DNA of 64,000 nucleotides, from positions 2,232,001 through 2,296,000 of the forward strand of contig OZ176050.1 in assembly GCA_964247055.1 (NCBI GenBank), in the 5' to 3' direction. Numbering within the stretch: position 1 is the stretch's first letter; the number at the start of each line of letters is the position of its first letter. A program made the position numbers and the translations under genes. The notes under the pieces were generated by a model. It did not search any database. It was given only the letters and a program-made list of their open reading frames with translations, and had not been told where the DNA came from. This DNA comes from Paragordius varius. Taxonomy: Eukaryota; Animalia; Nematomorpha. Positions 1 through 64,000 of the stretch are shown here, piece after piece.

Positions 1-2346
1 CGATTTTCGTGTCACAATCAATCCTTATCTATCAAAAGATTCTCATATCATTCCGACATTTGATCAATTATTGGGTAAAATCGGAAATGGACATTCATTT
101 TCAGTTTTGGATCTCAAGGATGCCTACTTACAACTACCGGTTGATAAAGAATGCTCTAATATTCTGACAATTACAACACACAGAGGTTACTTTACGTATA
201 AACGATTACCTTTCGGGCTCACAAATGCTCCAATGATATTTCAACGAGTTATGGATCAAATTCTGGATGATTGCACAGGCGTTTGTGCTTATCTGGATGA
301 TGTTCTGGTAACCGGCAATACACACACTCAACACAAAGCAAATCTTGAGCATGTGTTGGAGAAACTTGAACAGGCCGGATTCCGTTTGCAACCAGATAAA
401 ATGAAATTCTTCCAGGAAAAAGTATCCTACATGGGATACGAAATATCTAAAAGAGGTATTAAGCCAACGGATGAAAAAATCAAGGCTATTTTGAAATGTT
501 TTGTTCCAAAGGACAAAACAACATTACGGTCCTTTTTAGGACTATTAAACTTTCATGAAAAATTTATTCCAAGATTACATTCAGTCATAAGTGATCTGCA
601 CACTTTAACTGGATACAAAATGCCATGGAAATGGGAGAATATTCATGATAAACAATTTGCACTGTCAAAACAACTAATAGCAAATTTTGTAACTGATTCT
701 GTACAATCCGCAATTGCCATTATTGATTGAGACCGATGCTTCAAACGAAGGTTTGGGTGCCATCCTTTTCCATGTAACCGAAGATGGCAAGCGGCCAATC
801 TCTTTCGCATCCAGGAAATGTTTATTTAAAACATTATTCGACGATCGAAAGAGAGGCCAAGGCGATTTTGTTCGCGGTAAACAAATTTCACCCTTTCATA
901 TATGGGAGATCTTTTAAAATATTGACTGATCATAAACCACTGATTAAATTATTTGGGGAAGACCGGAACTTAACCGGAGTCACTAATATAAAATTATTAC
1001 GTTGGATTTCAAAATATCGGGGTATGATTATACCATTCATTTCAATAAAGGGGTTCAAAATTTAGCTGATCCCCTATCAAGATTAGCAATTGACGATCCT
1101 GAAATGGATGATGATCATGCTGTAGCTGAAAAAATTCGGTTCTTATCTATGAACGATTTGAACATTAATAAAAAAATGTATTAGATCAGTCCAATAATGA
1201 CCCGGTGATAAAAAAATTAAAAATTGCATTAAATTCCAACAATTGGGATGATCCAGATCTAAAAAATTATCAATCACATCGCAACGCTATCCAAGCATCG
1301 TATAATTTAGTTTATTTCGAGGATAGACTCATTGTTCCTAGATCCATGCAAAATGAAGTCCTAAACTACTTTCACACTGGACACCCAGGGATAAGTACCA
1401 TGAAGTCCCTTGCGCGCCACAGTGTATATTGGCCAGACTTGGACCAAAGTATTGAATTGCTTGCGAAGACATGTGACTCATGTCAAAGATACAAGCCCAA
1501 TGTCCAGGAAAATCCAACATACAAATGGAATTTCAACACCGCCGTCTGGGAAAGAATACACATAGATATTGCTGGTCCCATTGATAATTTCTACTGGCTG
1601 GTAACAATTGACAGCTCGTCCAGATGGCTGGAAGTTAATTTATTGAAACAAGTTAGGAGCAGGTCTGTTTTAAATTGCTTAGAACAATTGTTTTCGAGAT
1701 ATGGTTTTCCTAAAATGATAGTAAGTGATAATGCATCGTATTTTGTATCGCACGATTTTGATGAACGGCTAAACACTTAAACATCAAACATGTTACGTCG
1801 AGTCCGTATCACCCACGAACGAATGGGTTGGTAGAAAGATCTATTTACACATTGAAAACTAAATATAAAGCTACGAAGAGGGCTGACATCTCTCCGCAAG
1901 AAGCAATGAATACCATTTTGTGGAGCTATCGGCAAGCAATTCATAGTGCAACGAGAGCAACACCGTGCTCATTATTCCTAAAAAGAGAATTGTTAGGTCC
2001 CTTGTCATGGTTAAAGACAATACCATCAGATTTTACGGATAATACTAGAGCCCCCTTACGTTGACGTTGATGATGCTATTCTGATTAAAAATGAAACAGC
2101 AGAGGGGTGGCGGAAAGGAAAAGTAATTAAAAGAACAGGATTATTATCATACAAGACTGATGACGGTAGCAAAATTCAGCGAAAACACGCCGATCAGCTA
2201 CAGAAGTCTGTTAGGTCACAACCCGCCCTTGACATTGTACCAGAGATCCCAGTTACGGAAGCTGTGGAGTCGGAGTGTAACTTGACAGAAGTACAAAGCC
2301 GTTATCCTCGCCGGGAACGAAAAGCTCCGGATCGTCTTTCTTATTA
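1..2346 (+). mobile_element. Ty3/gypsy (Mag-like) LTR retrotransposon pol, frameshifted: RT, RNase H, integrase; 5' part lies outside the window
   Basis: ORF pieces carry RT motifs (LDLKDAY, RLPFGL, YLDD), RNase H (ETDAS, TDHKPL) and integrase (FHTGHPGISTMK...C..C, RIHIDIAGP, VSDNA). They end in RYPRRERKAPDRLSY* at 2346. Several frameshifts and stops. Confidence 0.95.
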
Positions 2347-42192: not shown

Positions 42193-44573
42193 ATGAGTTT
42201 TAAAATATGCCGAACTTGTCAAAAACCGTTTAACCAATGCAGTACCTGTTTGGTACCATTTATGGACGAAGATCCAAATGCAACTTCAAATTTACACCCA
42301 CATTCTCCATCACCTTTGCAGTTTAACACAACTAATTCACCCCAAAACGCAATTAGTACACCTCACAATGAATTTTCTTCTATTACAAATGAAAACACCA
42401 GCTCTGACACAGAGCTTGGTGATTTTAAAGCTGAAGCAGATGAACAGGATATCATCTCCTATGAAGATACAGAAAATAATTCGCAAAATGATGCTATTAT
42501 TAATTATAACAATACACAATCACCAAATACTGATAAAACCGCAATTGACGATACAAGTAAAAATAATTTTTACAATACTGCTGAAATCAGAAAATGGCAA
42601 GAGATAATAGCCTATTTTGCCATACAAACATTAATTAGCATATTATTAGACAACTGTGTACAATGTCTCAATAATAAGTCTACAAAAAATTTACCAAATA
42701 AAGATCCATACGAAAATGACACAGAAGATAATCAATCAGTTAGGGGAGAAAAGATAGACAAAACGCCAGAAATGTATGGACCAAATGACAGTTTTTATAT
42801 ATACAGACCTAAGCCGTTTGAGCTTTGGCAAAAGACAAAGCCTGGCCCCTGTATATTACAAGGAACAGCCATAAGTATACAACAGAAATATAGTGAGTTG
42901 ACGTCCCTTCATTTTGAGGAGATTTTACGCCAAGAAGCCGAAATTTGCAAACAGTTGGAGGAATATTCGCGACAAGTTTCGCAAAACTTGGAGTCCATAT
43001 ATGTGATGTACAAAAATGAACGGTATAGAGAATGCCAATTTGAAAAAAATATAGTTCAAAAATTAGTGAAAAAATATGCAGACCTTGAAGTAGAATCTCT
43101 AACTGATCTTGTGGTGAAACCGAATAAAAAAGGTTTTACATGCACTTAAATAATTTCATCAAAAATGTTTTCATCTATAAACAACTAAATGAATCATAGA
43201 TTATTTATTGATTAAACTGTTACAGAAAGTAAAAATAATAATTAAATTTTTAAACATATTATTTGTTCCTTAATTTTCATGTAAATATATGGCTTTATTA
43301 TCAAAATAAAATTTCGAAATGCCGTTTAAACAAAATATTTTAAAAATTATGATAAAATGAATAAAAGGTATTATTTTTTACTATAGATATCCTATTATAA
43401 TTCTTAAGCTTAATAAACATTTCTTCCTGTAAAGGACAAAAGCAATCCAAGACCGCTACAAAAGAACACAAGAATGAAAGTAAAAGGCAAAAGAAAAAGG
43501 ACTCTTCAAAGGACGAAACGACACAAGTTGTCGCAAAACGCAAACTATCCGCTCCAACCTCCTATCAAATTAATAAAATAACAAAACCAATAACGAATGA
43601 AAGTCTGAGTGATTTTACAGATTCCTCCGAACCAATTTATATAAATCAATCTAACAATCATCATCAACCGCCACCACCACTTCCACCCCGTCAAGGTTTA
43701 AGGAAAAATAGATCGCCAGGTTCATCCGTACCAATTTACATAAATCAATTCAATGATCAACAACCGCCACCACTTGCCCCTCGACAAGGATCAATAATGA
43801 ATAGACCACCTAGTTTCTCAGAACCAATTTATATGAATCAATCTAACATTCATCAACAGCCGCCACCAATCCGAGGTCCAGGTTTAAGGATGAATAGACC
43901 CCCTAATCCATCCGAACCGATATATATAAATCAATTGAATGATCAACAACCACCACCACTTCTCCCTCGTCAAGGATCAATAATGAACAGACCGCTTAGT
44001 TTCGCAGAACCAATTTATATAAATCAATCTAACAATCATCAACAGCTGCCACCAATCCGAGGTCCAGGTTTAAGGACAAATAGACCCCCTAATCCATCCG
44101 TACCAATTTATACCAATCAATTGCATGATCAACAACCGCCGCCACTTCCCCCACGCCAAGGTTTATTAGTAAATAGGCCGCCTTTTTCTCAAGGTGTGCA
44201 TGAGACTCCTGCTTTTTCTCCATCTAAAGCATTAAAACCGCCAATGCCGCTACCGCAAAACCTAGCACCAAGACCGCCGCCACCAAGCACTAACCCAAGA
44301 TATGTGATTCCCGCCTTTTCTCCATCCACTGGAAACTTTGCAACAAGACCACCACCCCCAAACAACGACAACCCAAGATATACGATTCCCGCTTGTTCTC
44401 CATCCACTGGATTCACAAAACCGCCAAACATTGCCCCAAGACCACCACCCCCAAACAACAATAGCCCAAGATTTGCTCAAGTTTTACCGCGTCGTTCACC
44501 CACCCCGAATGCAACAACTCACAAAAATAAAAAGAAAAAATGGTGGAATTGTTTTAGTGTAAAAACAACCTAG
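42193..44573 (+). CDS. Orphan protein, about 692 aa, two exons: N-terminal CxxC-x6-CxxC, acidic/Asn-rich region, helical region, Lys-rich linker, Pro/Tyr tandem repeats, polybasic-Cys C-terminus
   Basis: Exon 1 (42193-43132) ends AAAG|GTTTTA and exon 2 (43435-44573) follows CTGTAAAG. The phase-1 join gives 2079 nt. The frame of ORF 43797 stays open and ATG-less back to about 43402, as expected for an internal or terminal exon. Confidence 0.65.
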
Positions 44574-45716
44574 TACCAAAATATGTTAATGAACGCTCAG
44601 CTATTCCTGCTAAATTAAGAGACCCGGGATAACTTAATTTGATATAATACTGAATAAAAAATTGTAATTTAATGATTATATAACATTGTCAATTTGAAGA
44701 TATGTGCAATGCACTAATTAATAAATGCAAAATAAAAATAATGAGACCAATACTTATGAAAATTACATATGAGTAAGTATACATTGCTTAATTCCACAGT
44801 ATATACAACAAAGAGCAGTATTATTAGCTAATAAAGGTAAAAAGAAAAAAACTACAAGCCATGTGCTATTTAGCAATCATTAATATCTTTCTAGCAATGT
44901 ATACTTATACTGTAAATTCGAGTGTATAAATATATCGGTAAAGTAAATCATATTACAACGCCCCTTCTAACACTGTGTCAAGTGGATATAAACGATATTT
45001 CTGACTCAGCATAATTTTATATTCAGTTTAAAACAAAACAAATAAATAAATTTTGGTTCTTTCCTTCAAGATATTATGTGGCCCGCTAATTGGAAACTTA
45101 CCAAGTACATGGACGTTTTATGCTCATAAATTCTGTAAAATTGTTATATTTTAAATTAATTATCTTGATAAGTCAATATCGAATATTTTATATCATTTTT
45201 TACAAAATTTGAATTAAAATTTATAATTTATTAATGCCCATCTATTTTTCGAATGCAGCCTGACGATTATTTGGCCCGCGATTATATTTGTGTTGAACGC
45301 TGGCTTAATGAAAATGATTTGGACATTTAGAAAAACTGCACTAACAGGGGAAACCTAGACTTGGCGATGATAGATGCTTTATATACGCATCATCCGCCTT
45401 ATCATTCGTCAGTCAATATTTTTGGGCTGGAATAATAGTTTGAATTGATTTTTTGATTCGCATCATTTTGTCGATCCAAGCCAACTGTATGCATTCGGAT
45501 GAAAAAACCAAAGGTTGGCAAAACTTAGTTATTGCTTTTCGCCAGATGTTGGTTGCCTCACATAGTTTGGGTTATCGACTGCCGAAATCTCCAAAAACAT
45601 ACCTCAATTATCGTGGCATCCAAAAATATATAATTGGGTTTTGAGCCCCTTTATACATAAAAAAATCTACCGATTTATAATTAAACTGCTAACCTGATTA
45701 GTTGTTTTGATATTAA

Positions 45717-48810: not shown

Positions 48811-51800
48811 TGTGGTAAATCGAGAAACCGTAAAACAATAATAATAATTATTGAGATAAAATGAAAAAACTACACTATATAAAGTGATGTTTATACATTT
48901 TTTGTGAATATAATATTTACATGTTAAATCAAGGTAAAATTACGTGTTCAGGTTAAAAACAAAATTGATACAATAGTTTACAAATATAAAAGGTCATGAA
49001 AAATGATTCAAATCTAATATATAAATTTGTCTAGTCTAAGGTTAAAACTGATGTATTCAAATCTATCATATCTCCTTATCCGAATCCGAGCCGATCTGGT
49101 GCTTTTCTTTCCCTAAGAGGATATCTCATTTCAAGTTCTCTCTAAGTGGTCTTTTCCGTTCTTATTTCAACCTCGGTGTCTTTTCGTTTTCTTTTTCTTT
49201 GCTTTGTTCCTCCCCCACTTCCCGATTATTGGTTGTTATCTTCATCAGTTTGGTTTATCGTTAAATTCATTCTCCTCTCCTGTTCTCGTCTCCGGTCGGC
49301 CGTAATTGATCCGCATGCTTGCGAAGGATTCGATTTTCATCTCTAACAGTGTACGAGATTACCCCTGTTCTCTCCAGAAAAATTGAACCTTTTCTCCACC
49401 CCGAATTGATATCATTCTTTAGCTACACTTCTTCGTCTGGTCTAAAAACTTGATTGGGTATTATGTCGTCCACTAATCGTTGTAAGGGTTCCCTAACCCA
49501 AGAGAAGCAGGTATTAATATTTCTTTTCAGAAATAAGTTATACGGGCACTCTTTTGTGGCGCTATGTACGGCGGAGCGATAACCCCATAACACCTTGATT
49601 TATTTTTTTGTCAGGAATCAGCTTAAATCCGTTAGCGATTTATAGTGTGCTTTTAAGGTGAAATGACACGTTCCACCAGCCCGTTTATTCGTGGATGATA
49701 GGGGGCACAGTGGCATTGTTTGCTCGTTGCAAGGTATCTTTAAAATCCTTCGATGCAAAATATGATGCATTATCGGTAACTATCATTCGGGGAAACCCGT
49801 ACCTTACACACCAAAATTCTAACCAATATAATATGTTTGCAGAATCTAAATTCTTAGCAATTCGACTTCATCTGGAGCTACTATCGATAGCTACTATCCA
49901 ATAAAACCTATCAATAGGACCGGCAACATCAAGATGTATCCGTTACCAGATACCCGTATTAAAATTCCATTTGTACGTGGAAATGCTATTTATGTTACTA
50001 CGGTTTTACTGACACCCCATACAAGATCTCACATAACTTTCGATGTCTTGGACCTGGCCAACCCTTGCCTTGGCAGACTCTTTCATTACATTAGACCCCG
50101 AATGTCCAATATGCAAAAATTTTAACGTTTCGTTTCGCAACGCCCTGGGAATAAACAGACGATCGCCCCAATACAACAAACCATATTAAAATTGGAGCTG
50201 GCCAATCATTATGATGTAGAGCCGCTTTTAATGTCATCAAAACTCATCCCGTAATGTATGTTCTTTACTGTAGGTAAAACTCATCCCGTAATGTATGTTC
50301 TTTACTGTAGGTTTAAGTTGTCAGTTGTTAAAAAGTTGATTTACCTGGATGGCCCTCAACCTCCTCAGTCGGTACTTGATACGGTAGACGAGATAACCAA
50401 TCTGCTAAATTTTCCGAACCATTATTATATTGTTTATTAAAATTATAATCGGCTGTTCCAAGTATTCATCTTACTAATCTACTATTGTTAATATTACTTA
50501 GATCTTTTTTAAAACAACTTGATAGGGGTTATGATCGGTTAATAATACGAACTTTCTGCCATACACAAACATTTTAAATTTTTCTAGCGCATATAAAATT
50601 GCCCTTGCTTCTTTTTCAATTACCGAGAAATGTTGTTCTGCCATCACACATTTTCGAGACGCAAAAGCTATGGTTTGTTTTCCCTCACTTGTCATATGTG
50701 ATAAGACTGCTCCGAATCCGTCATTCGATGCGTCTGTTTCCAACACTAACGGAAGGTTCGGGTTAAACGGTGTTAGACACAATGCATTACTCACCAACAG
50801 TTTAGTGTTATCAAAAACCATCTCTTCTTTTGTCGACCAACACCATTTCTTAGAACCTGTGAGCGCATCTAAATCGTCGATTGCAGCATGCAAAGATGGA
50901 ATAAAACGAGCGTGAATATTTAACATTCCCAAAAAAGACCGAAGTGATGTTCTATTGGTAGGTGTAGGACAATTCAAAATTGCTTTTACCTTTTCGTTAT
51001 CATGTTTAATTCCTTTGTCTGAAATTATATAGCCTAAGTATGACAATGAGATAAGAGCTAATTGGATTTTGTCCTTTTTAAATTCCAAACCTACAGTAGC
51101 TTATTTGTTCAAAACTTTTTCCAAATTAACTTTATGGTCCATTACCGTTGTTCCACTAACAATTATATCATCTAAGTAAACCGTTGTACCTGGACAATCT
51201 TTTAATAACTCATCCATAATTTGTTGAAATATCGTGGGTGCACTAGATATTCCAAATGGCAGTCTCTTAAATCGAAAAAGACCTATATGTGAACTGAACG
51301 CGAGTAATGTTGGTAATCTTGGTGTATCAGCATTTGCTAGTAAGCTTCTTTTAGATCTAGGGTCGTAAAAACTTTTTTTTGCCCGATTTTGAACACTAAT
51401 TGATCGAACGTTGGAATAAAATGATCGACAAGAACCAGAATTGGGTTAACAGTAACCCTAAAATAACCATAAATGCGAACATTATCATTCTTTTTAACTA
51501 TCACCAACGGAGTTACCCAGTCAATTCGTGTTTGCGAGGGGTATATGGACTCTGGTACCCAGACTTTCAAGCCTCTTTAATTCACTCTCCACCTTAGACT
51601 GAAGCTGGATAGGTACCCTCCTGGGTTCAAATCTTTTGGGGCTCCCTTTTTGAGCAACAACTTGATGGGTGGTCCCGTGTAACATCCAATCTCACAAAAT
51701 AAATCCTTAAAATTATTTAAATCCACGTAACTAACATTTTTAAGAACTACAGTCTCTGAAAATCTACGTTAAAGGCTTCCACGGTAAAACAAAAATGTTA

Positions 51801-52996
51801 CCCCAATCCTCCCTGGTAACCATACATTCCAACTGTTGACCATACCGTTCCATTTCACATCTACCATCTACACCTTGATGGTTTAACCCAACTATAGGAC
51901 CCGCGGGTGCTAAGATCGGCTTTCCAATCTCCAGCCACGTTTTTCCCAATCTATGATATTTGAGCTCCGGTATCGTACAACATCCTCACCCAATGGCCAT
52001 TTAGACTTGCTTGTCGGGATTCATTATTATTATTGTTACCATTCACTATATTAATTCGCCGGCACCTGCCAAAATGACATCGCTTTGCATCAATAACACT
52101 CTTTGTTTGAAGCGGGGCACCAGTTGATCGCATGCACGTATCCACATTTTTTACACTTTTTTCTTATCATCACAACCTGCATATTGTCGGGATTCTGATC
52201 AATCAAACAACTGTTTTTCGTACGCCATTGCCATTTCTACCACCATCTCCAACGTAATCGTCCCATCAAACATTGCGTTTGGAAATTTTGTGAACGAATC
52301 TATTTCTTGAGTTGTAAGACTCCAACAAACCCATCTCTGATTCTTAGCATTGCATTTTGCCCAAAGTTACACCGGGCACCACATTCCTTTACCCGAATCA
52401 AATAATCCATCACTGATTCCGTGGGTTCCCTTCGGAGTTGCGTAAACTGGAACCTGGCTGCCAACACATTGTATGTCGGAACAAATACTTTTTTTCCAGC
52501 TGCTACCCAGCCCACTTCTTCTAACAGTACGGGATAAAAGAATTTCTTCAACTTTGGAAGATGGGATAAACCGATATAGGTCAATAACAAGTTTTTTTTG
52601 TTTCGTCATCTCCTTGAATTAATTTCACTTTTAACATTCTATTTATATAATCATCAAAGCTAGTTGCGGGATCATATGCTTCCAGACCTAATTTCTCCAT
52701 GCGCGAATGTAATGAGGTAAAAAAAATAGACCGCGCCAAATGTTGTAAATCGAGAAACCGTAAAACAATAATATTTAGTGAAATAAAATACAAAAACTAA
52801 ATTAGGTAAAGTTTGCGATGTTTATATACTTTTAGTGAATATAATATTTACAAGTTAAACCAAGGTAGTGCGCAGATTAAATACAAAATTGATACAATAT
52901 TTTAACTCAATTATAGGGCATCAAAAATGTATTCAAATCTAATATATAAATTTGTCTAGTCTAAGGTTAGCTAAACTGATGTATTTAAATCTACCA
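48811..52996 (-). mobile_element. Full-length but decayed Ty3/gypsy Mag-clade element (about 4.2 kb): 5' LTR 52741-52996, 3' LTR 48811-49068
   Basis: PBS TGGCGCGGTC next to the 5' LTR. Gag with two CCHC knuckles, protease YDTGAQIS, RT (LDLKEAY, YLDD), RNase H (ETDAS) and integrase ending RYPLRERKAPDRLGFG*. PPT GGATAAGGAGA. The 5-bp target duplication ATAAT is seen at 48806-48810 and, in the duplicate copy, at 61734-61738. Confidence 0.95.
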
Positions 52997-54055
52997 GAAC
53001 AGACTACATCAAGTGATTCATGGAGATTTCAGATGTTTAAGCAGGATTTATGAAAGGGCGTATCACCAGAAATCACATCTCTAACACGCAAAACATATAA
53101 AGAATATCAAGTAGAGTTAGTAATATGTTGTATAGATTATACCCAATTTAACTCGATTAACCATGTCTATTTATGGCGAGGTTTGGAAGCAATGGGAACT
53201 ACAGTAATTGTTACCTTGCTCAAAAATTTGTATGGACATCAAAAGGCCATAATACAAAACTCGGTGGGCAGAACCAACGAAATTTCAATACAGAAGGGTA
53301 GTCAAGGATGTTGCCTCTCACCAGACTTGTTAAACATTAGTACAAAAATGATCATGAGAAAAGTATATGAAGCTAACCTAAGGAGGGCGAAGGATTTACA
53401 ATCTAAGATTCGAAGATGACGACGCTGATTGCAATAATGTAGAAAGTTTAAATAATATGATATAAGAGGAGAAAGCCAGTAGAAGTAGTAAATAAAAACT
53501 TATTCTTATGCTCTCTAAATATAAACGGATCCTTCACGCCAGATATTCACCGCCGCATAGCATTAGGGAAGTCAGCTGAGAACAAGTTGACTAAATTATG
53601 GAAAAGTAAAGATATCACTATGGAAACTAAAAAGAGAGTAATGAAATGCATGGTTTTTCCGGTAACTTATGCTGCCGAAAGTTTGACACTAAAACAGAAT
53701 GATAAAAAAGGATTGCAGCATTGAAAAATGGTGTTGGAGGATAATGTTGATTAGATGGTCTCACAGGGTTAAGAATGAAACAATAAGATAAATATTAAAT
53801 TCTGAGAATTACTTAATGGAAGCCATAATATTGGTCACATTTTCAGAAGTACATCTCTCGAGAAGTTTCATTTTTACAAAAGGGGAAAAAGGAAAACCGA
53901 TGTTAAGATGGCTGGATAATGTAAAGAAAGAATCTGGTAGATGTGTAAGGGAATTGAAAGAAATAGCCCGGGAAAGAAACAAGGGGAGAGAACTCGTCAT
54001 TTTAATTAAGGGATTGAACTCGACCTAAGGAATTACCTTCCTACCTTCCTAATAA
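52997..54055 (+). mobile_element. RTE-clade LINE, 3' part (RT and 3' end), continuation of 47570-48810
   Basis: Resumes QNRLHQ..EISDVxAGFMKGR, QGCCLSPDLLNI, RRIALGKSA and GKPMLRWLD. It ends in short TACCTTCC repeats, as is typical of RTE tails. Confidence 0.88.
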
Positions 54056-54329
54056 AAAATAGTTTAAAAACGCTAAAATAAATAAATGATATGACTTTGA
54101 TATAAGTTAAAAACAAAACAAAACAAAAAAGTTGTTCTAACTGGAAGTGTTCAAACACATTCTTGAAATGCAAATGGTATATATACATTTGTATACCAAG
54201 GATTTCAATAGCGTAGTTAGGGAGAGGGAATGGGAATGCACTGGGCGCCATAGTTGTTTATTTTTTTTAATTTTATTTCAATAAAATAGGTATTTAAAAG
54301 TTATTTAAAATTATCGATAAAAAATCACC

Positions 54330-54520
54330 CATTTATAAGTGGTCATCACCTTTAACCTTGACCGAAATTCTCTTTTAGTATTATCAATATTTAAATCTAA
54401 TCAACTCCTTCATATCCTTATTAATATCTCTCCACTTTGTCTTCAAGCGTCTACCTTTCTTACCTCCAGCCTGTTCATATCAATCAAGATAACAACCTTC
54501 AAATATTTTATTTCAATCAA
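54330..54520 (-). mobile_element. 3'-end fragment of a different LINE (RTE-like), shared by both arms of the inverted duplication
   Basis: The minus strand reads GRRLKTKWRDINKDMKEL, resembling an RT C-terminus. A homologous inverted copy is at about 60235-60430. Confidence 0.5.
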
Positions 54521-56081
54521 AATGTCAGATATATATATACACGATAAGACGATATCAATTAATTTTTATTTAGATTTTTATAGAAAGTGATTTTTAAATA
54601 TTCCATGGCAAATATTGCATATATATATAGATATATATATATCAAGTAAATACTCCTTTATGTACCGATATTAAAGTTGAATTTTTTGCAAATCATTTAA
54701 GATTCTGAGCGAATTTTAAAATATGTATTTTTAGCCTTTTAGGAAAATAATTCAAATATTATAATTGCAAAGGCGTCATATCAAACCTTTCACCGCCATT
54801 TTACAAATTTATTGATAGGCACTGCTTTCAAATCAGCGGATAAAAAGTGTTTTGATAAAGCTTATAGCCTGATAGATAAATATATCAGGATTCTCTTGGT
54901 GCTATTGGTCTTAATGCTAACGAGCTAAACAAAAATTAACTTTTGTTGTAATTGCTCGATATCGGAAAATCGTATGTTTTTTGGTAAAAATGAATTCTTT
55001 TCAAAAAAATTATAACGAGAAGCCCATTTCTAAAGGGAGCGAAAATTTGACACTGGGGCCAAAAAATTTTCGCTGTTTAATATATGGTGTAGATATGTGA
55101 CAATGATAATTTTAAGCACATAGCTTTTTCAAATAAAATTTTTTAGGGATATTGTCTCAAATTTTGCAATTTTTAATATAAAGATAACACTAATATGTAT
55201 ATATTTTTTATATCACAATATAAAAACCTCATGATAATCCTGATACTTTTATCTCTCAAAATAGAGATATATATATATTATTATTTTTATGTGCATGTAT
55301 AATACAAAAATCAATGTATATTATGGTTTGCCATTACACTTAATTTAACTTTTAAATATTTAGAAATGAATTTTGATATTCTTGTAATCCGCTTATATAA
55401 TAATTGGTATATAAATACGATTATTATTGACACACCATACCTTTTGGGGTGGTTTTGTTTTCTAAAGTCATTTAAAATCAGAATATTTTAAAAAGTAAAG
55501 GTATTAAGTTGAATCTAAAAATAGGCTTTCTTAAGTTTTTAGGCACATTATCCAATTTTTTTAAAAATCATCATCACAAGCTTTTTTGCCGCCTTTTTTT
55601 GAATCGCTAATGCAACATGCAATCTATATTATGGTTAGAAAAATAAATAATTAGCTTTATAATGCTTGTTACATTCTACCAGCAAAACTTAAGGTAATTA
55701 GATTTTCATATGAGCTGTTCACAATGGTGTTTTGGGGTGTCCCCTTTTTAAGAAGTCGCAAAACTGTAAAAAAATAAAATTTTTATCTACATGAGAACAA
55801 TATTTGATTATTAAATGTTAAATATAATTACTTTAAATCTGTAGTTTATTTACAAAATTGAACTCTAAGATATAAAAAACCCCAAAATGTAAAATAGGAC
55901 AAAAAATGAAGAGATAGTGTGCTAATATCTGAAATACTATAAAAATTAGCCTAGAAGCCATATTGTAAAAATTTTAAAGATATATGAAAACATATATTAC
56001 TAGAAATCTATTAACAAACCAATATATAATTTTTTTCTAATTCAAAAATATATCTATTTTATTTTTATATTACGATGCAAA

Positions 56082-58286
56082 ATGATAAGGCGTTTTGAGG
56101 TCATACCCTTACTTATGAATGAATCGGTTTTAAATTCAAAATTGAATGCTGCTAAACATGCGGTTCAAGATAATTTATTGAAGGACAATTTAAAAATTGG
56201 GATTGGTAGTGGAACAACTATAGTGTATGTTGCCAAAGAATTAAGTAAATATTATGTTAATATTTATTATTTTAGGCAAATTGAAAAAGGACGGCAAGAT
56301 TATTAATCTTATTTGCGTTCCAACATCCAATCAGGCCAAGAACCTTATTTTGGAAGCCGGATTAACATTAGCCACGCTTGATCAATATCCTGAAGTTAGA
56401 AACGATTGATTATTTAGCTTGATATTTGTATCGATGGAGCTGATGAGTTTGATTCAAACCTTAATTTGATTAAAGGCGGTGGAGGTTGTTTGGTTAAAGA
56501 AAAAATTATTGCTTTCAATTCCAAATATTTTGTTGTGGTTGTGGATGAGAGGTTGTTTTTATAAACCAAAAACCTATAGAAAACATTCAAACATGTTAGG
56601 TCAAAATTGGAATCGTGGGATCCCTGTTGAAGTTATTCCCACAGCTCTAGTTTCAATCAAAAAATACCTGGAAGCTATCAATACAATTGGGTTTGGCCCC
56701 TGTAAAATAAGAGAATCAACTGAAGTTATGGTATAATTTTTTTTAATTTTTGGAAAGGGTTATTAAGTCGACCCTTTTTATGATTATTTTTTCCGATAAG
56801 GAATGGACGCTTAAAATAAAAGCATAAATAATCGCGGACACATTTTTTAATTTTGGTTTATCAGGTTTGAAAAATTGAAAAAAATTATAATTAAAGCAAG
56901 CCAATACGTCTTTATCCAAAAATTATATAGTTTTTTTAGTAAGCGACATGTCAATTAAATAATTAAAATTCCATGCCAGAAAATAATATGGAATTTTTCT
57001 GAACTACATCTATATGATGCGATATATATGTTAATTATATTTTGGAAATAATAATCATCATTCATTGGTTTCTAAGGTTCGGGGCCTCCAGAGTTACCAT
57101 GTCACTATTAACTTGTTCATGTTTGATATCGAATCTTGATAAATTTTGAATCAGGTGTTCTAGTAAGTTTGGGCGTTTTCTATATGGGCCGTGTTTAGTT
57201 GTATGTTTTGCATTTTAGAATTTAATGCTAATATGCCTCCTGATGGTAATATTTGCAATATATATCTTCAATCAAACTCAACATTTTTTCAATCATTATA
57301 ATCTATTATAAATTCAACACTTTTTCGATTATAAACAACTTTTATCCAATCAAACTTACCACTTTTAACTCAACTAAATAATTAGTTTATTAGATTAATT
57401 TTAAGTATTTTAATGTTTTTTATTATAATTACTAAATTATTGATAATTAATTTATTACTTTGCAGAAATGTTAAAGTTTTTGGTATAAAAATCGTTGGTA
57501 TTGACTATATATATGAACAGATAATGAACACAAATTTTTTTAAAATCTATTTTAAGATTATGTTTAGTAAACTTTAGCTAATAAATGTTTTTGAATAAAG
57601 TATGTTGAGTAAAAAGTAGTATAACTGCGAATGAGTTTGGTCGAAAAGCGTAACATTATAGTTTTAATTATATAATTTTCAACTCCAATTATTCAAGTTT
57701 ATTGCTGTTAGCCAAAGTTTCTTTGCACATGTATTGGCTGGCCTTATCTTCGTTTTGCGAATTTGATTGGAAGGATATCGATTCGCCTAGAATCAGACAT
57801 TCTTAAATATATTAAAGTTAGCCCTAAAATCAAAATTTACAAAATGGAGGAGGACAGCTATGACATATGAAACTAGTAAATTGACTGAGTAATGCTGATT
57901 ATCATATTATTATAAAAATAAGGATTTCCATGAAAGTTAACTAGGGCTATAAGCGTTATAAAATTTATATGAGAAAATCAAAATTAATAAAAATTATAAA
58001 GAACCGTATTTATACAAGGATACGTTGCTTCACCACTATTTTTATTGGAAAACCATTGAATTTAATTTTATTATAGGGACCCGCAATCACAGAAAATGGA
58101 AATTTTATTATTGATTGGCAATCTTCTTTCCTTAATAATCCAAATGCGGATTGGAAAACGCTGTATGATGAAATCAAAAAAGTCCCTGGAATTGTAGATA
58201 TTGGCCTTTTTCTTAACATGGCCGATGTTATTTATGTTGGGAATGAAAATGGTGCCACAGTTTTGAAATCAAAAACTCGTCATTAA
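56082..58286 (+). CDS. RPIA: Ribose-5-phosphate isomerase A, 5 exons, about 258 aa (247 aa if the second ATG is used)
   Basis: Exons 56082-56244, 56276-56394, 56418-56551, 56580-56730 and 58077-58286 total 777 nt. Motifs [47 protein letters not shown] and [10 protein letters not shown]. Confidence 0.95.
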
Positions 58287-58979
58287 TCCCACGCAAGCCA
58301 CAATTAAGGAATTAAAAAAAACATTTGTAATATTAGATATATATTTAAAATTATAAATCCAATCATCGATCAATCAAATTATTTAAATCTTAATATTATT
58401 TACCTTAAACTTAGTATATTTTATGTGAAAAAATTATTTATTCTAATAAATCAATGATAATTCTAAATTTTATTTGCGCACCATGATGTTATTTTACATA
58501 AACCCGTATAAATTTCTTCATTGATTTCTCAAATCGTTCATTCATTCAAATTATTAATATTCCTCTTATTTTTGGTTGGGTAACTAGCTATACTTTTATA
58601 TATTAGAATAATGAGGTTCTTCAATGAGACCTATAATGGGAAAGCAATATCTCTTATTTTTTACTTGTATAGAATTAATCGAGTTTAAAAAAACTTAAGA
58701 ATACATACTGTCATACGAAACCTTAAACTTTTTGTTTTATTGTATTATATATTATTAAATTCAAAACACACATTAAAATATTCATCTATTACTGCCAAAA
58801 AAGCGATTTAATATAATTAATTTTAAATAGCTAAATTTTGCATAATAATTTTTTAAAATTTATTAAGTAAAAAGTCACTGTTTAAAAGCTCAACCAATTG
58901 TAGACTTTATTCAATGTTCCAATTAAGCTTTAAATTATGGTAGTAATAAGTTTTTATTGGTTTTATGTTTTAATTTTTA

Positions 58980-59440
58980 TCTTATTCAAAATATTGTCCA
59001 TCAACTTCTACGCATTTCTTCCACATCATCAATAATAGATTGTAGTACATTTGCGGCGCACCATTCTTTAAAGCAGTTTCCAACGTCAAAGAATTTAGGC
59101 AGATGGCGCCAGGTCAGGTAACTACAGTGGATGCTAAATGAAATGATGATCTTGTGAAGTTTGCCATTTCTTCTGGCCCATTCCGACCGTTTTTCGATCC
59201 ATTCATGGTGGTAATCAAATATTTGAAGAAATTGTGTATTAACGGTTGTTTACACTTCAAAAGTTTATAATACACAATACCGCTATGATTCCGGTAGAGA
59301 CAGAGCATGGTTTTCTTGGGAACCGAATTGATCTTGGTATTGATGGAACGGCTTGGCAAAACGAACATGACAATTTTTTCGCCTTTTTCAGAATAAAGCC
59401 AAATCACCCGTCATAATTTGTTTGCATGAAGGATTTCCTT
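58980..59440 (-). mobile_element. Decayed mariner transposase (catalytic half)
   Basis: QIMTGD, KKTMLCL..NHSGIVYYKLLK, a degenerate YSPDLAPSD (TTACCTGACCTGGCGCCATCTG) and WKKCVEVDGQYFE*. Confidence 0.85.
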
Positions 59441-60689
59441 TTATGAGGTTAAAGCAGGATTAACAAGTCAATTTGTGATTTTGGATTAGACGTTCATTCA
59501 AATTTATGGGACCTATATACCTAGTTTATTAGTCTTTCGATTGCTGGGAGACCTCTATTGATTCAGAGACGTAGCCTACGTTTCTGGCAATCGCTGCGTG
59601 AATCCTGATGACGCCCCCTCCATGCAAATTGCATTTAAATAGAATTCAAACAGTGCTTGAGATGAAATGTGATTCGTCATAAACAGAAACACGTGAAAAA
59701 AAACATGCACATCAACCCCATTCCTTTGAAAACGACAGTTTGCTTAGCAAATGTATCATTAATTAATAAATGATGATGTAGGTTTCTGCTCGAAAATTCG
59801 ACTTAGTTAAAATGTTGTATAAAAGCAGTATTTAAACTCAATTTTAAAGCGTAATCCACTAAAACAGATATTGGAAAATGGTTTGCATCCGAAAAAGAGT
59901 GGCAATTCGGTATTAAAAACATAAATAAATTGCGCAAAGGTTAAACATAAAATTCCATGAAAACTGCATCCCTAGACATAAATAACCTATTGTAATATAA
60001 TCCACATCTATTAGGTTATAAGGGTAACAAAATAAATATAAAACCACGACATGTACGTAGATGCATGCCCTAAATTGAGAAAGAAAATATATAAGCATTT
60101 ATTTTGAAATTTGCTTTTTCTTATCATTTTTAATTTTAAAAAATTTAATATAATGAATGACATTAAGCAAGCAATATATATAATTTTAAAAGAATATTAA
60201 CACAAAATACTTAAAAATGACACTTTGGCGATTTAAAAATATTTAAAGGTAGGTTACTTGATTGATATGAACCTGAGGGTAAGAAAGGTAGGAACTTGAA
60301 GACAGAGTGCAAGCTATTAATAAGGATAAGAAACAGTTGGTTAAATTTAAATATAACAATACTAAAGGAGAATTTCGGTCAAGGTTAAAGATCATGACCA
60401 CTCATAAATGGGTGATTTTTATGGATAATTTAAAATATTTACTTTTTATTGAAATAAAATTGAAAAATTTATACAACTATGGCGCCTGATGCATCAGCCC
60501 CCATACTCCCCCTAGCTACGCCATTGAAATCCATGGTATACTAATGTATATATATCATTTGCATTTTAAAATGTCTTTGAACACTATAAGTTGGTATTTT
60601 GACTTTTTTGTTTTGTTTTTAACTTTTATCAATCAAATCATATATAATTCATCTATTTTATCGTTTTTAACTATTTTTTATTAGGTAGG

Positions 60690-61733
60690 TAGCTAATTCC
60701 TTCAGAGCCCTTGGAAATAAATGACGAGTTCTTCCCAATTGTCTCTTTCCCATGCTATTTCTTTTGATTCCCTTACACTTATACCAGATTCTATCTGTAC
60801 AGTATCCAGCCATCTGAACATCGGTCTTCCTTTTTCTTTTCCCTTCAACCAAAAATTAAATCCTTCGTACTTCTTAAAATGTGACAATGTACAAGAACTT
60901 TTTTTTATTATAGTTTCCATTAAGTGACTCTCAGTATGTTTCATTCTTAACCTTGTGATATTACATTCTTCTCCAACAACATATTTCAATGCTGCAATCC
61001 TTTTTTTATCATTCTGTTTTAGTGTCAAACTTTCGCAGCATAAGTTGCTACCGGAAAAACCATGCATTTCACTCTCTTTTTGGTTTTCATAGTGATATCC
61101 CTACTTTTCCATAATTTAGTCAACTTGTTAGCAGGTGACTTCCCTAATGCTATGCGGCGTTGAATATCTGGCTCGGAGAAGCCGTTTATATCTATTAGAG
61201 AGCCCAAGAATAGGATTTTATTGACTACTTCTACTGGCTTTATTTTCTTACAAATCTTATCATATCATTTAAACTTTCTACATTATCTGCTATAAGCGTC
61301 GTGTCATCTGCAAATCTTAGATTGTAAATCCTTCGCCCTCCTATCCTTAGGCTTTCTATAGCTTCATCTACTTTACTCGTGATCATTTTTGTACTAATAT
61401 TTAACAAGTACGGTAAGAGGCAACATCCTTGAATACCCTTCTGTATTTAAATTTCGTTGGTTCTGCCCACCGAGTTTTGTATTATGGCCTTTTGATGTCC
61501 ATACAAATTTTTGAGGGTAACCATTGCTGTACCCATTGCTTCCAAACTTTGCCATATGGACATGGTTAATCGAGTTAAATTGGGTAAAATCTATACAACA
61601 TATTACTAACTCTACTTTATATTCTTTATATTGTTTGCGTGTCACGTTAGAAATGTGATTTCTGGTGCTACGCCCTTTCATAAATCCTGCTTGAACATCT
61701 GAAATCTCCCTGAATCACTTGATGTAGTTGTGG
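60690..61733 (-). mobile_element. Inverted duplicate of the RTE 3' part (52997-54055)
   Basis: Reverse-complement collinear with 53000-54050 at roughly 90% identity with many small indels. Confidence 0.9.
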
Positions 61734-61738
61734 ATAAT

Positions 61739-64000
61739 TGATAGATTTGAATACATCAGTTTAGCTAACCTTAGACTAGACAAATTTATATATTAGATTT
61801 GAATACATTTTTGATGCCCTATAATTGAGTTAAAATATTGTATCAATTTTGTATTTAATCTGCGCACAACCTTGGTTTAACTTGTAAATATATATTCACT
61901 AAAAGTATATAAACATCGCAAACTTTACGTAATTTAGTTTTTGTATTTTATTTCAATAAATATTATTGTTTTACGGTTTCTCGATTTAACACATTTGGCG
62001 CGATCTATTTTTTTACCTCATTACATTCGCGCATGGAGAAATTAGGTCTGGAAGCATATGATCCCGCAACTAGCTTTGATGATTATATAAATAGAATGTT
62101 AAAAGTGAAATTAATTCAAGGAGATGACGAAACAAAAAAATGTTATTGGCCTATATCGGTTTATCCCATCTTCCAAAGTTGAAGAAATTTTTTATCCCGT
62201 ACTGTTAGAAGAAGTGGCCTGGGATGGGTAGCAGCTGGAAAAAAAGTATTTGTTCTGACATACAATGTGTTTGCAGCCAGGTTCCAGTTTACGCAACTCC
62301 GAAGGGAACCCACGGAATCAGTGATGGATTATTTGATTCGGGTAAAGGAATGTGGTGCCCAGTGTAACTTTGGGCAAGATGCAATCCTAGAATCAGAGAT
62401 AGGTTTGTTGGAGGATTACAACTCAAGAAATAGATTCGTTCACAAAATTTCCAGATGCAATGTGGGACCATAACGTTGGAGATGGTGGTAAAAATGGCAA
62501 TGGCGTACGAAAAACAGTTGTTTGATTGATCAGAATCCCGGCAATATGCAGGTTGTGATGATAAGAAAAAAGTGTGGAAAATGTGGATACGTGCATGCGA
62601 TCAACTGGTGTCCCGCTTCAAACAAAGAGTGTTATTGATGCAAAGGACGAGGTCATTTTGGCAGGTGCCGGCGAATTAATATAGTGAATGGTAACAATAA
62701 TAATAATGAAGCCCGACAAGCAAGTCTAAATGGCCATTGGGTGAGGATGTTGTAAGATACCGGAGCTCAAATATCATAGATTGGGAAAAGCACGTGGCTG
62801 GAGATTGGAAAGAAGATCTTAGCACCCGCGGGTCCTATAGTTGGGTTAAACCATCAAGGTGTAGATGGTAGATGTGAAATGGAACGGTATGGTCAAACAG
62901 TTGGAATGTATGGTTACCAGGGAGGATTGGGGTAACATTTTTGGGTTACCGTGGATGAAAAGCTTTTAACGTAGATTTCCAGAGGCTGTAGTTGTTAAAA
63001 ATGAGTTACGTGGATTTAAATAATTTAAGGATAAGTTTTGTGAGATTGGATGTTCCACTGGACCAAAATCAAGTTGTTGCTCAAAAAGGGAGCCCCAAAA
63101 GATTTTCACCCAGGAGGGTACCTATCCAGCTTCAGTCTAAGGTGGAGAGTGAATTAAAGAGGCTTGAAAGTCTGGGTATCAGAGTCCATATACCCCTCGC
63201 AAACACGAATTAACTGGGTAACTCCGTTGGTGATAGTTAAAAAGAATAATAATGTTCGCATATATGGTTATTTTAGGGTTACTGTTAACCCAATTCTGGT
63301 TCTTGTCGATCATTTTATTCCAACGTTCGATCAATTAGTGTTCAAAATGGGGCAAAGAAAAGTTTTTACGACCCTAGATCTAAAAGAAGCTTACTGGCAA
63401 ATGCCGATACACCAAGATTACCAACATTTACTCGCGTTCAGTTCACATATAGGTCTGATTTAATAGACTGCCATTTGGAATATCTAGTGCACCCACGATA
63501 TTTCAACAAATTATGGATGAGTTATTAAAAGATTGTCCAGGTACAACGGTTTACTTAGATGATGTAATTGTTAGTGGAACAACGGTAATGGACCATAAAG
63601 ATAACTTAGAAAAAGTTTTGAACAAATAAGCTACTGTAGGTTTGGAATTAAAAAAGAATAAAATTCAATTAGCTCGTTCCTCAGTGTCATACTTAGGCTA
63701 TATAATTTCAGACAAAGGAATAAACCTGATAACGAAAAAGTTAAAGCGATTTTGAATTGTCCTACACCTACCAATAAAACATCACTTCGGTCTTTTTGGG
63801 AATGTTAAATTTTCACGCTTGTTTTATTCCATCTTTGCATGCTACGATCGCGGATTTACATACGCTCACAGGTGCTAAGAAACGGTGTTGGTCGACAAAA
63901 GAAGAGATGATTTTTGATAAAGCTAAACTGTTGGTAAGTAATGCATTATATCTAACATCGTTTAACCCAAACCTTCCGTTAGTGTTGGAAACAGATGCAT
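61739..64000 (+). mobile_element. Inverted duplicate of the gypsy element: 5' LTR 61739-61993, PBS, gag, protease, RT, start of RNase H; runs off the window
   Basis: Reverse complement of 50728-52996 at roughly 95-98% identity. Shares inactivating lesions (e.g. YGYFRV for YGDFRV and the same frameshifts) and the same insertion site in the RTE. Confidence 0.95.

Follow-up and report, generated by a model that had tools for sequence, protein, structure and literature searches.

LAT is a disordered chain that carries several pY-x-N sites (pY, phosphotyrosine) recognized by the SH2 domain of Grb2 or Gads, is anchored to the membrane through cysteines and forms multivalent clusters (PMC6624021, PMC10132753). 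The sequence YINQ, present at Y1068 of EGFR, is a Grb2 docking site that can be used alone (bioRxiv 10.1101/2025.11.19.689362; PMC4230624). Among proline-based ligands, the S5 (PPAIPPRQ) and S9 (PPVPPRQ) sites of SOS1 bind the N-terminal SH3 domain of Grb2 (N-SH3) at ~30-40 uM, and PxxxRxxKP is the Gab2-type ligand of its C-terminal counterpart (C-SH3) (PMC11391413). Here we analyze a gene of the hairworm Paragordius varius whose predicted product carries ligands of both the tyrosine and the proline type. The gene lies on the plus strand at positions 42193-44573 of a 64,000-nucleotide stretch of DNA (GenBank assembly GCA_964247055.1, contig OZ176050.1, positions 2,232,001 to 2,296,000), which we refer to as the window. 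It is intact, has two exons and encodes a protein of ~692 residues, the second exon being the stretch that holds six PIYxNQ motifs and that an earlier note had described as an orphan array of SH2 and SH3 ligands. We favor, with rather less than even confidence, the reading that this protein is endogenous and intracellular and serves in phosphotyrosine signaling as a docking scaffold, possibly with a lipid anchor, for Grb2-type adaptors.

The likeness to LAT lies in a tail that is predicted to be disordered and that bears six YxNQ sites (six to eight in paralogues). Nevertheless, Pfam and protein searches gave no sequence relation between the two, and the window family, unlike LAT, lacks a conserved transmembrane helix, has a folded helical domain and an N-terminal cysteine knuckle, and places SOS-type SH3 ligands and YxN sites on one chain. 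With the EGFR tail (Y1068, YINQ; Y1086, YHNQ) the protein shares an identical Y-I-N-Q core, but its motif is free of any kinase, is repeated six to eight times and has Ile instead of Glu at position -1. With their flanks, the two sites read PEYINQS in EGFR and EPIYINQS here, the residue after the core being identical as well. The proline motif PP-x-PPRQ is that of the SOS1 proline-rich domain (S4, S5, S6 and S9), although the window protein has no RasGEF, DH or PH domain and only two strict sites per chain. The earlier note had proposed the array tyrosine motifs as Grb2-type ligands, and the match to validated ligands (YINQ of EGFR and PPxPPRQ of SOS1) is closer than it claimed.

In general type, the protein also resembles FRS2, Gab/DOS/SOC-1, Dok, IRS and Shc, which have no enzymatic activity and act as scaffolds that recruit Grb2 through a number of YxN and PxxP sites, and some of its paralogues share PxxxRxxKP with Gab2. 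It differs from all of these in having no PH domain, PTB domain or myristoylation signal (by Pfam, and with a chain that starts MSF) and in belonging to a separate, lineage-specific family. The bacterial EPIYA effectors (CagA) and Chlamydia Tarp offer a further comparison, through the E-P-I-Y sequence of four of the six motifs and the tandem tyrosine unit. However, position +1 here is I, M or T and never A, the tyrosine is followed by x-N-Q and not by A-x-x, and the gene is eukaryotic and intron-bearing and encodes no secretion signal, while some of its paralogues lack the motif.

The array, its gene and candidate partners

The sequence facts on the gene and its array are solid. Translation of 43437-44570 gives EPIYINQ, VPIYINQ, EPIYMNQ, EPIYINQ, EPIYINQ and VPIYTNQ, with tyrosines at exon-2 residues 68, 101, 132, 163, 194 and 225 and the PIYxNQ hexapeptides at 43632-43649, 43731-43748, 43824-43841, 43917-43934, 44010-44027 and 44103-44120 (here and below, window coordinates refer to the plus strand). 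Each motif is followed within ~10 residues by a proline run, as had been described. At the sixth motif, position +1 is Ile in other DNA runs and in the paralogues, owing to a C>T difference at 44113. Tandem Repeats Finder reported periods of 186 bp (43625-44161, 2.9 copies, 85% matches) and 93 bp (43618-44165, 5.8 copies, 68% matches), bearing out the suggested higher-order unit of ~186 bp: over 43618-44165, two kinds of 93-bp subunit are paired into 186-bp units.

The proline runs had also been put forward as class II SH3 ligands, and this held for only some of them. The strict pattern PxxPxR is present in two of the six runs, as PPLPPR at exon-2 residues 80 and 235. The first of these sites is the SOS1-like PPPPLPPRQG (43668-43697), which is conserved family-wide, and the second is PPPLPPRQG (44136-44162), identified by pattern scan. 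The remaining four runs (PPPLAPR, PPPLLPR and PPPIR/LPPIR) failed the strict pattern and are near-consensus only.

Asn at +2, the pY-x-N ligand pattern, is present in all 28 motifs of the window gene and its three closest paralogues. Src/Abl-type kinases favor Ile at -1 and Glu at -3 of the tyrosine, a preference that the array motifs fit. The genome contains at least 12 SH2 loci, many SH3 loci and more than 50 tyrosine-kinase-type matches, along with an SH3-SH2-kinase gene at C6:3.887-3.894 Mb and a Grb2 orthologue at C5:3.998 Mb. The latter's PDB matches down to ~1e-13 were all Grb2 SH2 domains (best ~1e-15). The Trp of its sequence ...YKYYVWIQKF... aligns with the Trp of human ...KYFLWVVKF..., a residue that we take to impose the pY-x-N preference.

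In the scaffold that we propose, a Src/Abl-type kinase would phosphorylate the array tyrosines, each pY-x-N-Q would dock the SH2 domain of Grb2, and the PPxPPRQ sites would dock its N-SH3. Because there would be many sites per chain for one bivalent or trivalent adaptor, clustering of the LAT-Grb2-SOS1 kind would be possible. The helical domain may oligomerize, and the cysteine knuckle, the C-terminal WNC (with a Lys run in the contig-1 subfamily), or both may tether the protein to a membrane. Since SOS-like sites and a YxN are found family-wide, this reading is somewhat more than a coincidence within one repeat.

The two-exon model has good comparative support. Exon 1 (42193-43132) begins with the ATG at 42193 and contains 313 full codons and the first base of a split Gly codon; the start of its product, MSFKICRTC, follows the pattern MSF.IC... 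common to all paralogues. Comparison with the paralogues places a phase-1, GT..AG intron of 302 nt at 43133-43434, as had been proposed, with donor G/GTTTTA (GT at 43133) and acceptor AAAG/ (AG at 43433-43434), so that G and GA are joined into Gly. Donor, acceptor, position and phase are kept in all paralogues examined, namely the three close ones and contig-3 copies that are ~55% identical in protein sequence, and the intron measures only 164 nt in two paralogues. Exon 2 (43435-44573), predicted to encode a disordered chain, has 378 full codons from 43437 and ends at the TAG stop at 44571-44573. An AATAAA at 44653-44658, ~80 nt past the stop and read from the sequence, is a candidate polyadenylation signal only, as such hexamers are frequent in AT-rich DNA. 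Words from the array stretch were not found in RNA-labeled runs of the organism, which are tiny (1-30 million letters) and uninformative either way. The six public runs that contain the stretch are DNA, with contigs that span the intron, and their GATC-started loose ends suggest Hi-C libraries. Rfam gave no match across the whole window.

As a separate observation on introns, the Grb2/Drk-like gene (G000:C5:3996800-4000200; approximately positions 1296-1940 of that locus, L030) has introns of ~24-28 nt, compared with 302 and 164 nt in the array gene, and the genome seems to mix ultra-short and ordinary introns.

Upstream of the array, exon 1 encodes the CxxC-x6-CxxC knuckle (CRTCQKPFNQCSTC; 42208-42249), which is kept in contig-1 and contig-3 paralogues and could be either a zinc knuckle or a palmitoylation cluster. 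It also encodes a conserved central domain (residues 131-313, 42583-43131; alignments A1 and A2), in which two long helices surround the highly conserved segment PND..IYRP..FE.W...PGPCILQGTAI. AlphaFold2 placed helices at residues 2-33 and 108-166 of this domain, at low confidence (mean pLDDT 56). Pfam returned no family at E <= 1 for either exon and none for the central-domain alignment, a PDB sequence profile search with the domain gave chance-level rows only (E >= 0.2), and an ESM Atlas search with exon 1 gave no usable match. A signal peptide or other export signal was sought in the protein and none was found, in agreement with the earlier note.

The sole hydrophobic stretch begins at residue 138 (residues 138-160, 42604-42672) and has a Kyte-Doolittle score of 1.77 in the window copy. 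The same region scores only 0.54 in one paralogue (L019, below), the homologue from Gordionus described below has no such peak, and the invariant residues of the helix are polar (Q, T, D, N and Q). A transmembrane reading was rejected because the hydropathy is not conserved. The helix is followed by CVQC in the window copy and in the paralogue at 2.05 Mb, the second Cys being replaced by Arg in the copies at 2.04 and 2.30 Mb; a helix with CVQC is reminiscent of LAT, in which a palmitoylated CxxC accompanies the transmembrane helix.

Within exon 2, a Lys-rich linker precedes the array (43437-43625; alignment A3), reading TSYQI at one position and including the conserved SDFTDSS. The array is followed by a further proline-rich tail (44163-44522) with three PAFSPS, one KPPMPLP and three RPPPP-x(3-4)-PR[YF] sequences. 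The last had been given as RPPPPxxxxPR[YF] in three copies; there are three, and the first has three variable residues rather than four. NPRY, an NPxY pattern, is present in two of these three units (44292-44303 and 44370-44381). The chain ends, as previously described, in KNKKKKWWNCFSVKTT (44523-44570) directly before the stop. As for the polybasic-cysteine anchor that had been assigned to this end, its cysteine-bearing part, [CW]WNC[CF]S, is present family-wide, while only the four contig-1 copies have the Lys run ahead of WWNC, and one of these copies loses the Cys to a stop codon. AlphaFold2 run on the single tail sequence gave a mean pLDDT of 44.7 and no secondary structure, which is weak evidence of disorder.

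A lineage-specific family

The description of the array gene as an orphan was wrong: the genome contains more than 20 loci of its family, and a homologue exists in another hairworm. Six-frame searches of the window's own 110.6-Mb assembly located three near-identical paralogues on contig 1, at 2.04 Mb (6 motifs), 2.05 Mb (8 motifs) and 2.30 Mb (8 motifs), in addition to the window copy at 2.27 Mb (6 motifs). These copies are intact, except for a TGA that removes the last nine residues, including the C-terminal Cys, of the 2.05-Mb copy. The window gene and the 2.30-Mb copy (minus strand; G000:C1:2301880-2304302) are mirror-imaged about window position ~57,235, which places both in the arms of a large palindrome (50728-64000). 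Their last 136 codons are identical and their introns are 91% alike with a length difference of 138 nt, and the pair looks like a gene-conversion mosaic. Decayed copies with several in-frame stops each form a tandem array with a period of ~5.6 kb on contig 1 at 2.60-2.63 Mb (G000:C1:2599585-2635212), where some fragments are in inverted orientation. At least 12 diverged copies lie on contig 3 at 11.59-12.33 Mb (G000:C3:11588149-12335492; loci L007-L012 and L019-L022) and have no tyrosine array. They are intact where examined, one having an internal stop, and exon 1 is split in two in the cluster copies but not in L019, which groups with the contig-3 copies.

Every member has the same three-part architecture: the CxxC-x6-CxxC knuckle, the conserved helical domain and a disordered proline-rich tail. 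The window protein displays the knuckle, the PGPCILQGTAI block, the phase-1 intron, two PPxPPRQG modules and the C-terminal WNC that characterize the family. All members that can be aligned in the tail keep the two SOS1-like PPxPPRQG modules (alignment A3 and tail listing), and all aligned members keep an invariant Tyr within TPYQN, itself a YxN, for which the window copy alone reads TSYQI. Other conserved tail features are SDFTDSS, PAFSPS, KPPMPLPPNFAP, NPRF and the C-terminal [CW]WNC[CF]S. In contrast, PIYxNQ is exclusive to the four contig-1 copies, which have 6-8 [EVQ]PIYxNQ motifs each, located in an indel of 6-8 residues beside each PPxPPRQG; the motif may have been either gained in the contig-1 branch or lost in the contig-3 branch. 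Other branches have amplified other modules, with four PAFSPATG...PPNFAP units in L019, and the contig-3 copies have one to four Gab2-type PxxxRxxKP patterns and, in some, NPF. Unequal crossing-over is the probable process that amplified the tail modules differently in each subfamily. From these comparisons we infer a lineage-specific multigene family in which the four contig-1 copies are very young paralogues.

To find relatives outside the genome, the exon-1 domain (alignment A1) was made into a profile and compared with 1.84 billion representative proteins; no word filter was applied. This search gave one true match (E 1.6e-25), CAK9297721.1, an unnamed 667-residue protein of another nematomorph, Gordionus sp. 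m RMFG-2023. The homologue search that had been suggested for this gene thus yielded one hairworm homologue and no known Pfam family. The likeness comprises the knuckle (58% identical over 31 residues), the central domain (33% over 186 residues) and a Pro/Arg-rich tail. However, the tail of CAK9297721.1 could not be aligned with that of the window protein, YxNQ and PPxPPRQ are both absent from it, and its intron positions are not those of the window gene. Its knuckle and helical domain are also separated by a BACK domain (PF07707, E 5.8e-15; residues 96-167); the window protein has no BACK and, in its place, a low-complexity stretch that is acidic and rich in Asn. For CAK9297721.1 itself, Pfam found BACK alone and an ESM Atlas search found BACK clusters only, with scores below 0.8; Pfam gave no indication that the window protein belongs to the BTB-BACK-Kelch proteins. 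A BACK-like open frame at G000:C3:12336574-12336744 adjoins the contig-3 cluster, on the strand opposite to the nearest family gene. The G+C content is 28% at the CAK9297721.1 locus and ~29% in the window; that of the Gordionus genome is 26.9% (bioRxiv 10.1101/2023.06.26.546503). Word-based protein searches found nothing, whether with exon 2 of the window gene (378 residues; candidates of 208-661 residues) or with the 439-residue exon 2 of the 2.30-Mb paralogue (candidates of 241-768 residues).

Selection on the array and competing explanations

Purifying selection acts on the contig-3 copies: their ratio of nonsynonymous to synonymous substitution rates (omega) is 0.16-0.40 for the helical domain and 0.22-0.58 for exon 2. 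Among the four copies on contig 1, synonymous sites differ little (dS 0.03-0.06), and the pooled omega of ~0.72 is not significantly below 1 (p = 0.15). The constancy of the core residues that had been noted within the window gene extends across the four genes: P, I, Y and N are kept in 28 of 28 motifs and Q in 27 of 28. Four of the five core codons have synonymous variants, and variant codon types are synonymous or nonsynonymous in a ratio of 4:1 in the core compared with 7:27 in the flanks (Fisher p = 0.017). The contrast speaks modestly for additional constraint on the PIYxNQ core, although the kinship of the repeat units and the post hoc choice of the core weaken it. There are also at least six separate length differences among the contig-1 copies (counted from listings), all multiples of three; the chance of six such in-frame differences is ~(1/3)^6 by our own arithmetic, which ignores the bias of repeats toward unit-length indels. 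The conserved frame of these copies contrasts with the several stops per copy in the decayed array at 2.60-2.63 Mb.

Several points weigh against a docking scaffold. Its function is read wholly from short linear motifs, and sequence rich in Pro, Asn and Ile that is encoded by an AT-rich genome readily gives rise to such motifs; canonical PxxPxR is limited to two of six proline runs. The invariance of the tyrosine motif is largely due to the youth of the copies and to concerted evolution, the omega of these copies is indistinguishable from neutrality, and the public-run search gave no RNA support for expression or for the splice. Among the features that would contribute to docking or anchoring, the Asn of the ancestral TPYQN is lost from the window copy, and one paralogue loses its C-terminal Cys to the TGA stop. 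Lastly, neither the contig-3 subfamily nor L019 nor the Gordionus protein has the array, which is thus dispensable for the core function of the family. The youth of the array and the relaxed constraint on it leave room for two rival explanations in particular, one in which the motif is accidental and one in which the duplicates are silent.

The first, which we consider unlikely but a serious competitor, is that these proteins are a proline-rich intracellular family that binds SH3 domains, WW domains or profilin, and that the tyrosine motif has no phosphotyrosine role, being a by-product, a short AT-rich stretch that unequal crossing-over copied along with the older PPxPPRQ module beside it. 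Restriction of the motif to four very young copies with an omega of ~0.7 fits this explanation, as does the finding that the 6-8-residue indel that holds the tyrosine distinguishes both ancestral modules from their counterparts in the contig-3 copies and L019. At the DNA level, the core is an AT-rich word (ccaatttatataaatcaa) in an AT-rich genome, and amplification of a different module elsewhere in the family (the four PAFSPATG...KPPMPLPPNFAP units of L019) is likewise what a by-product would lead one to expect. Nevertheless, the core is conserved between two older types of subunit that are only ~68% alike overall, and nonsynonymous variants are rarer in it than in its flanks. Moreover, it is the exact sequence of a validated Grb2 site, located beside SOS1-like sites, and the family to which it belongs already retains a YxN.

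A more elaborate version of the docking scaffold, which we regard as decidedly speculative, would amount to LAT plus SOS in one chain. In this version, SH3 ligands of the SOS and Gab types, together with one YxN, would already have enabled a lineage-specific docking family to bind Grb2; an EGFR-like PIYxNQ would then have appeared next to each PPxPPRQ module in one branch, where the pair was amplified 6-8 times. Once phosphorylated, the array would let Grb2, with its SH2 and two SH3 domains, cross-link chains into membrane-proximal condensates without a third partner, making the array a recently born clustering switch.

The second rival holds that only the contig-3 branch is functional, the four young duplicates on contig 1 being silent or in decay within a palindromic region of segmental duplication; this seems improbable to us. 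An omega not different from 1, the premature TGA in one copy, the decayed copies nearby and the lack of the stretch from every RNA run are all compatible with silent duplicates. On the other hand, the four copies retain open frames of 690-750 codons with only in-frame indels and with intact splice sites and start codons, and the RNA runs, given their size, speak neither for nor against expression. We give a similarly low likelihood to a non-signaling, low-complexity protein (of a condensate, the cytoskeleton or reproductive cells) in which Pro and Tyr confer material properties. The tail, predicted to be wholly disordered, is 21% Pro and contains many Asn and Gln, and copy and repeat numbers turn over quickly; yet what is conserved is a set of short motifs at fixed spacing (PPxPPRQG, TPYQN, PAFSPS and NPRF) and not composition. 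Least likely is the suggestion, made in the earlier note, of a host-directed mimic that is delivered by the parasite, phosphorylated by host kinases and captures host Grb2 in the manner of EPIYA effectors or Tarp: repeat-amplified tyrosine motifs and a fast, lineage-specific expansion do recall pathogen effectors, and the sole outside homologue comes from a parasitic hairworm, but the protein has no secretion signal, its family architecture is intracellular, the knuckle and helical domain are common to paralogues without the array, and Grb2 and tyrosine kinases are encoded by the animal itself.

If, as in the docking scaffold that we prefer, the tyrosines are phosphorylated and read by Grb2, then evolution would have produced, in a little-studied group of animals, a docking family separate in origin from LAT, FRS2, Gab and Shc. 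Its docking sites would be seen close to the moment of their origin and multiplication, with paralogues of 0, 6 and 8 sites in one genome, and the family would provide a natural test case for the origin of multivalent phosphotyrosine scaffolds and for the tuning of clustering by valency. If the tyrosines are unphosphorylated, the array would instead serve as a caution that perfect-looking motif arrays can arise from an AT-rich insertion and unequal crossing-over.

Two further features of the sequence concern the surroundings of the gene and the genome at large. Retrotransposon open frames with reverse transcriptase and integrase flank the region, at window positions 71-1780 and 50498-51570. 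The mitochondrial cox1 gene (G000:C44:7480-8820) contains six in-frame TGA codons, so TGA is a sense codon there, as in the invertebrate mitochondrial code, and a cox1-like fragment with stops is present on a nuclear contig (C1:10612280-10612597).

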